Assembly: GCF_052425735.1 (NCBI RefSeq)
Contig: NC_135768.1
Coordinates: 8,742,001 to 8,806,000 of the forward strand
DNA: 64,000 nucleotides
Reading direction: 5' to 3'
Source: Oculina patagonica
Lineage: Eukaryota
A model generated the notes under the pieces. The model worked only from the letters and a program-made list of their open reading frames with translations, was not told the DNA's origin and did no database searches. The position numbers were made by a program, and so were the translations under genes. Positions 27,131-32,804 of the stretch are shown piece by piece. Each line of letters opens with the position of its first letter. The stretch's first letter is position 1.

Positions 27131-27904
27131 TTAAAGTGTAAATGACAGAAAAATATTTTCTGCTTATTTGAAAGGCCTTTCGAAATAAGAAGAATGGCGT
27201 TTTTCTTTTCGAAATATCTTTTTTCGTTTCAGAGATATTGCGTTTTTGTGTTATGCAAATTAGATCAGTGATGACGTCATAAGATTTGACTCTAAAAAAT
27301 GGTAAAATACTGAATAAAAAATATCTCTGGAAATATTGAAGCAGTGTTCTTGAAACTTGGCGCCACAAATGTGCATCACAACAGGAACAAAATGACACCC
27401 TTAGTATTGTTGCCATAGCAACTCTTTCAGCTCCAGTCTCTCTCTGTCAAAAAGACAAATATCCCCATATCTGACCTCTAAAGTGAGACAAAGGGTCCTG
27501 CTTAGAACAGACATAGTTCCCATATTGCCTTAATTCCCACCATCGGTTTGACTGTGCTAGATGTTCTTGGTTTAAGACAAAAACTGGGAATTTCAGTTTT
27601 TATTGAGACAGCACCAGCGGCAAACTGTTGTCATGGCAACAGCCCTAAGAGTGACATTTTGTTTCTTTTGTGATGCACATTTGTGGTGCCAAGTTTCAAG
27701 AACACTGTTTAGTTTTAGAGATTTGTTTATTCAGTATTTTACCATTTTTTAGAGACGTCATCACTGATCTAATTTGCATAATACAAAAACGTCAATATCT
27801 CTGAAACGAAAAAAGATATTTCAAAAAGAAAAACGCCATTCTACTGAATTTTGAAAGGCCTTTCAAATAAGCAGGAAATATTTTTCATGTCATATACACT
27901 TTAA
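27131..27904. mobile_element. Kolobok-like MITE with ~290-bp TIRs and TTAA TSD, nested in an older TTAA-ended repeat
   Basis: TTAA|AGTGTAAATGACAGAAAAATATTT ... AAATATTTTTCATGTCATATACACT|TTAA; long inverted similarity. Confidence 0.9.
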
Positions 27905-29071
27905 ATTATGCGCAGTACGGGATGCGCAATGCAATACTGAGGAATGACCTTAACATAGTACTGAAATTTTTTGTAATTTTAATTTAATGTAATTTGTTCA
28001 GCTTAAAAACGCTTAAAGAGCAGTGTAAACCAAACACTACCCTGACACTTAAAGAAATAAAGTTATAAATTCATTGAACAACCGGTAGATTTAGCTAACT
28101 TTTGAGGGAGAGTTATCATATAAAATAAAACATCAAACCAACAAACTATTTTCAAATCTTGCAGTTGGCACATTTTTATTGTATTTTTCGCCTTCTTGTA
28201 AAAATGAACTTTTACAAACATGACTAATGTATATAATTTAAATTTCGAAAAGAGGCTATAATATTTATTCATATTTTTCACACACGTATATAAGTTCATG
28301 TATATAATGTTGAGCTCTGTAACATGCAGAAAATAAAACACGATATTTCTACATGCGTATTTTCACAAAAGTACATATAAACGTATGCATGTCTCGAAGT
28401 ACAATAACCTATTTTTTGTCACATTCTACACTAAAAGTATTATAAGCTTAAAAACGGGAATAACATTTATTAGAGTGAACCAAACTCTAAACTCACTTTT
28501 TTCCGCGCTTTCTACAGTTGAATTCAAATTTGAAGTATTATTTACTATCCTATTCTAAACATTCGGTAAGGCTAATATTAAGACTATTAAATATTTTAGT
28601 CTCGGTATGTTCACATTTTGTGGTCTGTAAGCTTTAAAGATAGTGGCTCGGAAGTCAGTGATCGCTTGTCAGGAAATCATAAAGCGCTTTCTTGTTTATT
28701 TTATCCCCATGCACAAGACGGAACACCTTGTATGAAACATAATGAAAAGCAAACATGATAAAACGATTTATATCAACTGGCTTACTTACAGAACGATAAC
28801 CGAACGCGATCATTATTGTCGAGTATTAAAAATAAAGATTTCGTTAACACTTCTGTATACTTTAACACACTACACTAAAGCTTAGAGACCACAACCATTA
28901 CCTTAATCCTCTACGTCCCAATACGTTAATTAATTTATGCTATCTCTACTATGATCTATAACCAAATTTGCCGCAGAAAATACACAAACCATTGCAAGGA
29001 AAAGATTGATAATGCCTCTCAGAGACCAAAGCTAATAGCACTATATTTGTGACAATAATAAATATTACTGA

Positions 29072-29104
29072 GAAACAAACAAACAAACAAACAAACAAAC
29101 AAAC
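29072..29104. repeat. (AAAC)n microsatellite in the putative DMRT 3' UTR
   Basis: About 8 AAAC units. Confidence 0.9.
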
Positions 29105-29479
29105 TCGACGAGCTTTTTTCTATCTTGGGTTTTGTTGCTTGGCCCTCTAGTCAACCCGCGTCAATAACAGCTAATATTATGTAAAAGTATCTTTTATGAC
29201 TTTATACGCAAACATGGCGTACAAACTAGCGATTTTTTTTTCTCGCGGAAAGAGCGTTTTTTACGAAGGTTGTTGTTATATATACACAAAGAAATCTTTA
29301 CATCGTCTTTGACGATGAACGTAAAAGAGTTGAATTTATAGCTCTTAGAGTTTTTAACCATTTTTTTACATGTAATAGTCCGAGGAAATTCCCTTATAAA
29401 TTTTAGTCGTAACAAAATTTTAATCCCCTTCGTTAAATAATTGCAGTAAATGAGCCGAGCATCTGTATATCGTTAATAA

Positions 29480-29634
29480 TTAACCCTTTAAGCACCAAAT
29501 ATCAACACACAAATTCTCCTCACATGGTTTCCAATTTTCTCCTAGTAAAATTTGAGAGAATTTATCTAACAATCAACAAAAAATTGCTTTTGTTAGGAGA
29601 AGTGTCGTGTTTATAGCTTGACTTAAAGGGTTAA
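29480..29634. mobile_element. piggyBac-like MITE in the DMRT 3' UTR
   Basis: TTAA|CCCTTTAAG ... CTTAAAGGG|TTAA. Confidence 0.8.
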
Positions 29635-29724
29635 TGTATACAAACTTATGAAGAAATTAACTGATGCTTAAAGATACGTTTCAACACATATTCATGAAAG
29701 AAAATATTTATACGAACATCTGCG

Positions 29725-30551
29725 TTATTTGTGGAGCTTTTGCCCACAGAAAGCACAAAAATTGTCCTCGCAATTTGCTTTTCGACCGCACTTCGTGCAA
29801 AAATGTACCATCACCGCTTTTTCCTCTCCTTTGGGAGACCCTGAGCCTGCGCTAACAGTGTTCGGCGGTGAAGCCAAGACGGCGTCCATGGAGAAAGGAT
29901 AACCGCTGACCTGTGGTTTCGGCTTGAGTAATGGCGGCGGTGGCGGGTAGGGACAGCTTGGACTTAGAGGGGGCCTGTGGAAAGCATGCGAAAAAGGCTC
30001 CGGCTTGCGAAAGAGCGGAGGTCCTTGAAAGTGTAGGGCTGGATGAATTGCAGTTGGTGCACCCCCGACACTGCCAATCACTGGCACAGGCATGCGTAGA
30101 GGAAACTGTTTCTTTTGTTCCTGATTTTGAAGTAAGCACTCTATTGCCTGAACAACGTTTCCTCCGCAACCTTGAAGGACTAACTCGAGCACGCTTCGGC
30201 ACTGACTCGGGAAAGCTCGCATTAACAACACGAGCGGATCTTGTTGGATTTTTCTTCCCACGTTCGGGCTTTCTGAAGTTCGGGGCATCTTCGATTGAAG
30301 TCGGAGGACATCGATTTCATCGTGTGGCACCTCTCCGTTGATTTTCCTCTTCGGGGACTGAAGCGGAGTTCCGTTTTCGCTCGGTGTGACCATCTTGTCG
30401 CCTTCTTCTTCATGTTCCGGTGTTTTCTCCGGTTCGGTCTTTATTCGTACACCGTCGATTATCGTCGGTTCAGGTTCGGAAGGGTGTTCGCTTTGAGAAT
30501 CAGCGTTTTCTTCGGATGCTGTCGGGGACAGTTGCTGATCGATACCTTCAT
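29725..30551 (-). CDS. DMRT: DMRT coding exon 2 (DMA domain, Pro-rich region, eh1-like motif, zinc ribbon)
   Basis: ccacag|AT GAA GGT..., open to TAA at 29725. Confidence 0.93.
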
Positions 30552-31521
30552 CTGTGGATTGACGACAAAGAAGAAGGAAAATAAATTAGCTCTTTGTATT
30601 AATTTAGCTCTGACAAACGTCCAAGGCAAGGAAACCTAATTTTATAGTCTAATTATGTGGAACAAGTAGTGTAGATTTTAATGATCCAGCCAGAGAAGCA
30701 GCTTTCCGTTAACGTTTATTCTTTGAGAGATAAATTATTCCGAAGACCCGACGACCTAGCTACAAAGATTTCCAAGCTGGCCCGAAGAGTTCCGAAAACG
30801 ACCCGAGACCTTAGAGTTTGAACAACATTGGTAGGTCAGCAAATATTTCCTATAGTCTAACGAATATTTCCGAAGATCACCCAATCACTACTCTTAATCA
30901 CACTTCATTTGCAGNNNNNNNNNNNNNNNNNNNNNNNNNNNNNNNNNNNNNNNNNNNNNNNNNNNNNNNNNNNNNNNNNNNNNNNNNNNNNNNNNNNNNN
31001 NNNNNNNNNNNNNNNNNNNNNNNNNNNNNNNNNNNNNNNNNNNNNNNNNNNNNNNNNNNNNNNNNNNNNNNNNNNNNNNNNNNNNNAGAGATTTAGTTAA
31101 GCATCACTTATGTTACCTACACTAATAAGTGAAAGGCTGAAAGCATACCTTCATAATCCGTGTCACTATCATTCCTTCCGTGTATCGTTGGCATTGAGCT
31201 TAGCACCATTGAAGGCCTTTGATAAACATCATCTCCAAACACCTTGCCTACTTGTTCCTTATCTCCGTCTTTAGGTTCCATTTTTTGCGTCATCTCTGTG
31301 TTTTTTCTCTGTTGCCGCAAGAGGGCCACCCGAGCGGCCGTTATTCGCTGGCGCTCAGCGATGAGAAGGCATTTAGAACAGGTACAGTCCCTCCATCTGC
31401 AGTAGTGTTTGTGTCCCTTGAGCCACGACAGAGCGCCATGATTACGGCAGCGCGCGCATTTTGGAATGCGGTGGTACAAGGCGCTACCCGGGGAGGGTAC
31501 CCTCGGAAGAATTTCACTCAT
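29725..31521 (-). CDS. DMRT: Doublesex/mab-3-related transcription factor (DMRTA/DMRT3-type: DM + DMA), 399 aa, two coding exons
   Basis: Exons 31149-31521 (373 nt) + 29725-30551 (827 nt) = 1200 nt, phase-1 GT-AG intron. DM domain [32 protein letters not shown]; DMA domain [32 protein letters not shown]. Confidence 0.95.
30915..31086. other. Assembly gap (172 N) in the DMRT intron
   Basis: Run of N. Confidence 1.
31149..31521 (-). CDS. DMRT: DMRT coding exon 1 (DM domain 31309-31470)
   Basis: cttttag|G ATG AGT GAA...; donor GAA G|GTATGC. Confidence 0.93.
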
Positions 31522-31619
31522 CCTAAAAGCAATCAAGGGAATACGGTTTAGAACATTTCAGTAAGGGACGTGTTACGGCTGAGTTTAGTCTATTTTATTA
31601 AGTTTTGCCAAATACTCAC

Positions 31620-31904
31620 TATGAAACTTTTAAAGTTATAAAATACAGAAAAAGCGAAGAAGTCACTTAGACTTTATTGCCTATGACTCTAAATGACAAA
31701 AGCATAGCTTCATTACAAACAAATATTTCTCCCAGACGATATAATAAAAGTTGCAACAAACGAATTAACTGTTCAGCCTAACAGTTTTTCAAAACCCAAT
31801 ATTGCAATCTGTTTTAATCTTCTTCGACTTTTGTCCATCCGAACTCTTTTGTATTTGCTGTGTTATTGAAATGTTCCTTCGCTGTTTTAAGTGCTCTTTT
31901 TATA
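31620..31904 (-). promoter_or_regulatory. Putative DMRT proximal TATA promoter and non-coding first exon
   Basis: TATAAAAA at 31904-31897, Inr-like TTCAAT ~31870, donor A|GTGAGT at 31619, 97-nt intron to the acceptor at 31523. Confidence 0.6.
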
Positions 31905-32804
31905 CCTTCACTCAATTTGGTGGCCATTTTATTGTTTCTGAATTTTGGTTAAAATTAATCCGTTACACCGTTCCTTTGATACCTACTCAACGTCATGCAC
32001 CTAGCTATACAGACCTTTTGTCGCTAAAGCGTGGGACAATCTTTGCTATATTATACAGGCTGGGTAAAAATTCTTTGTATGGGAAGCGACAGTTAATCGC
32101 AAGAGGGCGCATTAAACAAATGGGTTCACGGCGGGTATCAGATTTGAAATAAGTGCAAAATTAATCCGGGAAATCACGTACATCTTCGTCCTCACGATAT
32201 GCAATTCTCGATAAAGCTTCCGTTTAACTCATTTTAGGCCTAAACATGCACATTCCTACAATCTGAGATCTTTTTTTTTACTACTTTCAGTCCGTAATTT
32301 CGATCAAATTGTTAATTCTCCTTATCCTCGCTGAAAGCAGTACATACATTTCTTTTGAAATTAGTTTCAAAAACTTTGATGGCACATCATGAGAAAGTTG
32401 ATCATTTTCTATATTTTCATCATGAACTGCCTACTTGACGATGTATTAACATTTTAAAGAGAAATTGTTTGTGGATCGTTCTTCTACAAGAAGTTTCACC
32501 TTATTTAACCAAGTTTTCATGATGGACCTTGAAACGTTTGTTATATTGTGGTTGTTTGATAGTAATGGGTTAAAAAAATCACTTTGAGCAATGAAATGGG
32601 CCAAAATTTATTGTAATTAAAGTCTCGCCTAAAACACGTGAGGCCGTAACAAACCGAGATAAAATAAATATTGCTAACGTTCCGAAATATAACGTCAATA
32701 GTGGGGCAAACGTGTTCCGGTTTTTGATGAATCTTCGTACAAGCATTCGAATGGTTTCCGATTTATTATCGACCAAGAAATATAGGGCCAGCGCCCGTAA
32801 GTGG

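Follow-up and report, generated by a model that had tools for sequence, protein, structure and literature searches.

Among the regulators of sexual and neural development in animals, the DMRT proteins are the best conserved, and to our knowledge cnidarians hold the largest DMRT sets. A 64,000-nucleotide stretch of the genome of the coral Oculina patagonica (assembly GCF_052425735.1, contig NC_135768.1, positions 8,742,001 to 8,806,000), referred to here as the window, carries on its minus strand a DMRT gene whose predicted protein runs from a DM DNA-binding domain through a DMA domain to a C-terminal tail with two CxxC pairs ten residues apart. The question raised by this locus is whether the tail is a domain in its own right, of what kind, and how far it extends among other DMRTs. 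Sequence and phylogeny identify this gene as orthologous to Nematostella DMRT F (NvDMRT F), and its tail, termed the ribbon, as a conserved four-cysteine (Cys4) terminal domain of the Zn_Ribbon_1/DZR type that probably acts as a zinc-stabilised docking knob for a protein partner. The original prediction, made from the letters of the stretch alone, had proposed that the ribbon may mark a single anthozoan DMRT subfamily; the distribution described below does not agree with that part of it.

We assembled the gene model from two coding exons (Table 1). Coding segments of 373 and 827 nt (31521-31149 and 30551-29725) add up to 399 codons and a stop. The first coding exon is bordered by an AG acceptor just upstream (31524-31523) and a GT donor (31148-31147), and an AG at 30553-30552 directly precedes the terminal coding exon. 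The only run of N in the window (30915-31086) lies within the intron and leaves the coding sequence untouched. The ribbon, with the spacing CTKC-x10-CAFC and cysteine codons at 29799-29797, 29790-29788, 29757-29755 and 29748-29746, shares one open exon with the DMA domain and is in frame with the DM exon through the intron. The DMA domain scores above its Pfam cut-off and lies C-terminal to the DM domain, which places the protein among the DMA-class DMRTs. Translation and Pfam thus confirmed a 399-residue protein ending in CxxC-x10-CxxC in frame with both domains, and the order originally proposed, DM, DMA, an eh1-like motif and the ribbon, was right.

To place the exon structure on transcripts, contigs from public runs of three studies, which carry two organism labels and whose RNA library type is only guessed, were mapped on positions 27500-32500. 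The joint from 30551 to 31149, read as CT..AC on the plus strand and GT..AG on the gene strand, was found in contigs of three runs. These contigs carry the exact intron joint that had been predicted, and they therefore derive from spliced RNA. The terminal exon is covered by contigs from 29662 to 30551, and two unbroken stretches, 29662-30324 and 29722-30096, span both the ribbon and the stop, the first extending into 63 nt of the 3' untranslated region. No joint internal to the terminal exon occurs among the 15 joints listed (the best 15 of 25). The results confirm the stop codon, and since the spliced contigs of the three studies carry the ribbon region, its removal by splicing was rejected as an explanation.

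The CxxC-x10-CxxC pattern occurs a single time in the six-frame translation of the window, where 0.08 occurrences are expected, and shuffling the non-DM part of the protein produced it in 16 of 200,000 trials. With the terminal exon as query, 29 proteins were retrieved, and the ribbon closes 27 of them; of the other two, one is a truncated Acropora cervicornis model and one a fragment. Matches with a name include Pocillopora, Acropora, Actinostola, Actinia and Nematostella DMRT F. The cysteines are thus conserved in orthologous coral and anemone DMRTs. In the alignment of orthologs the linker diverges, while conservation reaches at least 90% at the four cysteines, at the Gly that follows the second and at the D-N-F that precedes the third. 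The same four cysteines are invariant in 33 ribbon tails drawn from several paralog groups (mean column identity 42%), in which the Gly following the second Cys and the Phe preceding the third are also at least 90% conserved. Paralogs differ in the loop that joins the two knuckles and in the residues between the third and fourth Cys, and most tails have a basic pair (R/H/K, then K/R) after the first knuckle.

These data bear on the view that the cysteine pattern has no function, being a chance or relic tail or a segment that is spliced out or untranslated. It would fit with the window copy falling under the Pfam thresholds, and with the absence of a ribbon from two of this genome's eight DMA paralogs and from the bilaterian DMA-class DMRTs checked. 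Such a tail would not be expected, however, to keep its cysteines invariant across hexacorals, octocorals, a hydrozoan and at least six paralog lineages next to a diverging linker, nor to run through spliced RNA contigs with no internal joint among those listed. Chance was rejected on the invariance in the 33 tails together with the shuffle counts, and we consider a functionless tail very improbable.

Like the window protein, NvDMRT F is 399 residues long, and the DM domain, the DMA domain, a proline-rich PPPPLL(K/R)PKPQ motif and the ribbon of the two proteins align column for column. Identity is 44% over the terminal exon (41% by local alignment). In an unrooted DM+DMA tree of 113 columns, whose deeper nodes are weak, the closest partner of the window gene is the F-type protein of Acropora (95/95). 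An F clade of the window gene, Acropora, Nematostella F and Actinia is supported at 85/92, and paralogs of the G, C and L007 types each fall into a supported clade of their own. Because the proteins share the same length, a colinear alignment and a supported clade, the window gene is, on this comparison of sequences, assigned as the NvDMRT F ortholog.

This assignment connects the ribbon to an earlier description. A 'zf-ribbon-3 domain' was drawn in Figure 1 of a survey of Nematostella DMRTs for NvDMRT F, with the remark that the role of this and the other additional domains was unknown (Traylor-Knowles et al., 2015, EvoDevo 6:13, PMC4433094). That paper gives the domain for F only, without conservation data or function, and in the literature searched we found no further paper linking a DMRT to a zinc ribbon. 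The architecture had accordingly been described in part: the ribbon is not new for DMRT F, and what is added here is the Cnidaria-wide picture and a check of its absence in Bilateria.

Comparison with Pfam defined the kind of domain. The window ribbon itself stays below the cut-offs of Zn_Ribbon_1 (PF13240; 13.2-16.1 bits vs 25), DZR (PF12773; 14.3-18.1 vs 27.3) and Zn_ribbon_3 (PF13248; 14.1 vs 27). Its relatives pass the Zn_Ribbon_1 cut-off in NvDMRT F (34.2 bits), NvDMRT G (27.6), Xenia (39.3), Dendronephthya (34.6) and Desmophyllum (29.8), and NvDMRT F also passes Zn_ribbon_3 (28.0 vs 27), in agreement with the 2015 paper (PMC4433094). Zn_Ribbon_1 matches five of ten full-length members at E <= 0.01, and NvDMRT C, the Acropora protein P0222 and the Clytia protein remain below threshold. 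Such sub-threshold scores probably account for the survey of 2015 having recognised the domain in no DMRT but F. The ribbon shares with Zn_Ribbon_1, Zn_ribbon_3 and DZR a layout of about 23 residues, consisting of an aromatic residue, CxxCG, some 9-10 residues, D-x-F-CxxCG and a hydrophobic residue. The window copy being under the cut-off, its membership in the Zn_Ribbon_1/DZR group, which is assigned by sequence, rests on homology to the relatives that pass; the DZR-like character first proposed for it is upheld in this way. The ribbon part of the profile also matches proteins with 13-19 tandem ribbons of these Pfam families, from unnamed metagenome contigs. Unlike those tandem proteins, the DMRTs carry only one ribbon, attached at the C-terminal end of a DM/DMA transcription factor of animals. 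We know of no function assigned to the Zn_Ribbon_1, Zn_ribbon_3 or DZR families, and membership is therefore uninformative on the ligand. A scan of the protein against NCBIfam gave nothing meaningful, and a PDB sequence search with the ribbon profile gave no significant match to the whole ribbon, its top hits being summed CxxCG knuckles of C2H2 arrays.

We modelled the ribbon with AlphaFold2 (AF2), which returned two short beta-hairpins at a predicted local distance difference test score (pLDDT) of ~89 in a 175-residue model and ~85 for the ribbon only. A Foldseek search of the PDB gave no match with E below 1 (best E >= 1.5). In an exhaustive search with VIA-align, the best-ranked neighbours were nearly all RanBP2/NZF-type fingers, with the Npl4 NZF finger at the top (Z 4.2, root-mean-square deviation (rmsd) 1.9 over 31 residues), followed by TAB2 (Z 3.9), RBM5 (Z 3.7), Nup153, RanBP2, MDM2, ZRANB2 (Z 3.0) and RYBP; FUS (Z 3.0) and HOIL-1L were also among the neighbours. 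These fingers have the same size and the same C-x2-C-x10-C-x2-C spacing as the ribbon, and the tighter matches reach Z 3.0-4.2 with rmsd 1.4-2.6 over 29-31 residues. Scores as low as these are expected, because only 34 residues are compared. Members of the RanBP2/NZF family bind ubiquitin, Ran, RPL11 or single-stranded RNA. The RanBP2 finger signature is W-x-C-x2-C-x3-N-x6-C-x2-C, and NZF fingers contact ubiquitin through a Thr-Phe pair that follows the second Cys, together with a hydrophobic residue that lies between the third Cys and the fourth. In contrast to RanBP2 fingers, the ribbon has a Phe directly before the first Cys in place of W-x-C and no conserved Asn at +4, and in contrast to NZF fingers it has Gly-Arg/His in place of Thr-Phe after the second Cys. 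The likeness, as far as the models show, is at the fold level only.

Two alternative roles follow from these neighbours. If the ribbon were an auxiliary nucleic-acid-binding finger, contacting single-stranded RNA or the DNA beside the DM site as in ZRANB2, RBM5 and FUS, then its predicted fold and cysteine spacing, which match RanBP2 fingers including those of RNA-bound RBM5, ZRANB2 and FUS, would be accounted for, as would the basic pair after the first knuckle and the weak sequence matches of the ribbon profile to archaeal Zn-ribbon RNA-binding proteins and RpoP. However, Pfam zf-RanBP does not match the window protein even at E <= 10, the W-x-C and Asn signature is missing, the inter-knuckle loop is variable among paralogs, and all structural scores are low. 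We regard this role as unlikely.

The second alternative makes the ribbon another ubiquitin- or ubiquitin-like-binding, NZF-like element that acts with the CUE-like DMA domain and sets the stability of the factor. The DMA domain, modelled here as three helices with pLDDT >90, has been described as a CUE-like module that binds monoubiquitin weakly, at ~400 uM; this binding sets the stability of DMD-4, and human DMRT3 expressed in worms showed similar behaviour (PMC7538159). Avidity would result from a second weak site, the closest folds to the ribbon are ubiquitin-binding NZF fingers (Npl4 and TAB2, also RYBP and HOIL-1L), and in this genome the ribbon always stands alongside a DMA domain (six of eight DMA genes, none of five DM-only loci). 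Yet the NZF signature, with its Thr-Phe and the hydrophobic residue between the third and fourth Cys, is missing, and Pfam zf_UBZ reaches at most 18.9 bits, below its cut-off of 25.6, through partial matches to the knuckles only. When the ribbon was modelled in complex with zinc and the coral's own ubiquitin, the prediction scored 0.01, which counts neither for nor against binding. A role in reading ubiquitin seems improbable to us.

The reading that we prefer is the docking knob. One zinc ion would be held by the two CxxCG knuckles, which are spaced by ten residues, and would fold the tail into two short beta-hairpins. The ribbon is translated as part of what the contigs suggest is the main transcript, and a disordered linker, rich in proline and bearing an eh1-like motif, ties it to the CUE-like DMA domain. 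As an autonomous module it would dock a macromolecular partner, a protein rather than DNA, and the docking could tune the activity or the stability of the DNA-bound factor. Cofactor docking of this kind, which formed part of the original prediction, is plausible.

The linker between DMA and ribbon comprises ~110 proline-rich residues of low AF2 confidence. Within its PPPPLL(K/R)PKPQ motif, which lies in a region with pLDDT of about 50-70, three P are invariant and the L, K, P and K are at least 90% conserved among orthologs; a related motif, PPPLLVKPKPE, is present in the G-type paralog. The F and L of the FSMDAVL motif are at least 90% conserved in the F-type orthologs, and its resemblance to FxIxxIL, the consensus of the Groucho/TLE-binding eh1 motif, was judged by eye. 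Candidate eh1 motifs have been reported in other DMRTs, namely DMRT2 and dmrt11E (PMC1310626).

Several points weigh against the docking knob. The window ribbon reaches at most 18.2 bits against any related model, Zn_ribbon_15 included, and is under every cut-off. The structural matches are weak in absolute terms, with a best Z of 4.2 between the predicted fold and its neighbours. The conservation of the Gly and the aromatic residue may reflect the upkeep of the fold and would then indicate no specific binding surface: both the Gly after the second Cys and the aromatic before the third match positions of the HMMER profile built from these same tails, and they fit what we take to be the generic consensus of the ribbon family. 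Finally, contigs drop rare variants, and a minor isoform may be made without the ribbon.

We surveyed the rest of the Oculina genome for DM domains and found 13 loci, eight of which have a DMA domain in a downstream exon. In six of these eight DMA-class genes the open frame of the DMA domain ends in CxxC-x10-CxxC: the window gene, a head-to-head neighbour ~62 kb away and four genes on contigs C8, C13 and C14. When the whole genome was searched with the profile of the 33 ribbon tails, the six best matches were exactly these six exons (E 8e-13 to 5e-4); the next match (E 0.0035) is not near any DM locus, and there was no match near any of the five DM-only loci. On this count of six in eight, the idea that the ribbon marks the F subfamily alone was rejected.

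The range outside this genome was assessed with an exhaustive profile search, from DMA through ribbon, over 1.8 billion representative proteins, which gave 1542 hits at E <= 1e-3. Among the best 150 of them, at least 32 span DMA to ribbon in one stretch, and every named DMA-to-ribbon match among those listed is cnidarian. Ribbon-bearing DMRTs were found in Scleractinia (Acropora, with three paralogs, Pocillopora, Porites and Desmophyllum), Actiniaria (Actinia, Actinostola, Exaiptasia and Nematostella, in DMRT C, F and G), Octocorallia (Xenia and Dendronephthya) and Hydrozoa (Clytia hemisphaerica). The cysteines are invariant across these hexacorals and octocorals, the one hydrozoan and at least six paralog lineages. 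The proposal of one anthozoan subfamily is thus contradicted by the six of eight genes in this genome, by NvDMRT C and G, by the octocorals and by the hydrozoan Clytia. The presence of the same ribbon at the extreme C-terminus, in the DMA exon, of most cnidarian DMA-class paralogs points instead to an old module inherited through the cnidarian DMRT radiation. A word-index search with the last 60 residues gave 17 candidates, all of them scleractinian-type relatives already found, and a look-alike search of the ESM Atlas returned only the cnidarian DMRT cluster (score 0.77).

The bilaterian DMA-class DMRTs (DMRT3, DMRTA1/DMRT4, DMRTA2/DMRT5 and C. elegans DMD-4) share the DM and DMA architecture. 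None of the 71 other DM+DMA proteins retrieved, nearly all of them bilaterian DMRT3, DMRTA1 or DMRTA2, carries the ribbon, which agrees with the expectation that bilaterian DMRTs lack it. This set covers a hemichordate, molluscs, a mite, sharks, teleosts, amphibians, birds and a marsupial, with Placozoa, sponges and ctenophores unsampled. Only 4 of the 71 have any CxxC after the DMA domain, and the median number of cysteines after residue 200 is one.

The names of three database entries are misleading or doubtful. An nr entry labelled Haliclona caerulea (P0024) was rejected as a sponge occurrence: it is 82% identical to the F-type protein of Actinia tenebrosa, and for this reason most likely represents sea-anemone contamination or a mislabel, judging by the sequence. 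The Exaiptasia entry KXJ14735.1 (P0156), named 'Phosphatidylinositol 4-kinase alpha', carries a DMA domain and a ribbon and is probably a fused or misnamed model. A metagenome open reading frame from the Joint Genome Institute (P0033) is a DMRT terminal exon named 'RNA polymerase subunit RPC12/RpoP', presumably on account of its ribbon.

The number of origins was examined on the DM+DMA tree. Mapped on it, the presence of the ribbon needs three changes, and the starred branches do not force more than one. The ribbon-bearing C-type and L007/Acropora P0222-type clades lie on the bilaterian DMRT3/DMRTA side of a split supported at 100/98, and the ribbon-less paralog L008 groups with DMRTA1/A2 (96/89 in a first tree, 91/89 in a second). 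Placing all ribbon bearers on one side of a branch was not rejected by the approximately unbiased (AU) test (p 0.175). The identical position, spacing and exon context argue for the ribbon having arisen once. It may have been gained in Cnidaria, or an older module may have been lost in Bilateria, and the tree leaves the choice between both. A fuller version of the second course, in which the ribbon predates the cnidarian-bilaterian split, was lost in bilaterians and in two cnidarian paralogs, and works with DMA as a second weak reader of ubiquitin or a ubiquitin-like protein that sets the stability of the factor, has in our estimate little chance of being correct.

On these results the ribbon is a third folded module of most cnidarian DMA-class DMRTs and of none of the bilaterian ones checked. 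Since most copies score below the Pfam thresholds, it had gone unnoticed in every paralog except one. It offers a simple character for sorting cnidarian DMRT paralogs and a test case for a module lost by bilaterians versus one gained by cnidarians. With 25 codons and four cysteines it also provides a handle on DMRT regulation in Nematostella, where knock-ins are feasible. The picture of DMRT function is unchanged by the ribbon until a ligand is found.

Table 1. Features of the DMRT gene in the window and of related loci elsewhere in the Oculina patagonica genome (window coordinates unless a contig is given).
Feature	Position	Strand	Details
Cys4 zinc ribbon (predicted)	29728-29802	minus	residues 375-399; Cys376, Cys379, Cys390, Cys393; followed by TAA 29727-29725
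eh1-like motif FSMDAVL	29875-29895	minus	residues 344-350; eh1 resemblance judged by eye only
Proline-rich motif PPPPLL(K/R)PKPQ	29911-29946	minus	12 residues in the linker; orthologue conservation
DMA domain	30133-30243	minus	residues 228-264; Pfam PF03474, 61.8 bits vs cut-off 23
DM DNA-binding domain	31333-31470	minus	residues 18-63; Pfam PF00751, 78.9 bits vs cut-off 27, E 2.5e-22
Terminal coding exon	29725-30551	minus	residues 125-399 and TAA stop; open frame, RNA contigs
Intron GT..AG	30552-31148	minus	597 skipped; joint in contigs of runs X1, X4, X9
First coding exon	31149-31522	minus	sequence and translation; ATG 31521-31519, ends in phase 1
DM-DMA-ribbon gene, NvDMRT G type	C11:8832713-8834266	plus	~28 kb past the right end of the window; loci L005, L010, L020
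Two tandem DMA-class DMRT genes	C13:38115377-38128391	minus	loci L001, L004, L013, L015

The head-to-head neighbour of the window gene, which lies outside the window, is of the G type, and its tail reads FCSRCGHKINMFDKFCAHCGK. F-type and G-type proteins were also found on equally sized contigs in Nematostella (22,031,953 bp), Actinia (130,448 bp) and Dendronephthya (2,058,963 bp); the equal sizes in three cnidarians suggest that the two types form an old, conserved tandem pair. In the tandem pair on contig C13 the DMA exons are ~6 kb apart, and the downstream gene, of the NvDMRT C type, has the ribbon whereas the upstream gene does not, which makes this pair a convenient natural comparison for what the ribbon adds.

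At the 5' side of the window gene, RNA contigs match as far as 31522, directly after the AG, and more than 300 further letters of them map elsewhere. The exon with the ATG is therefore not the first, and one or more non-coding 5' exons would lie further upstream. The regions 27500-28000 and 31508-32008 showed a very high summed contig depth in four runs, with many short divergent contigs and odd joints, and look like expressed repeats flanking the DMRT gene.

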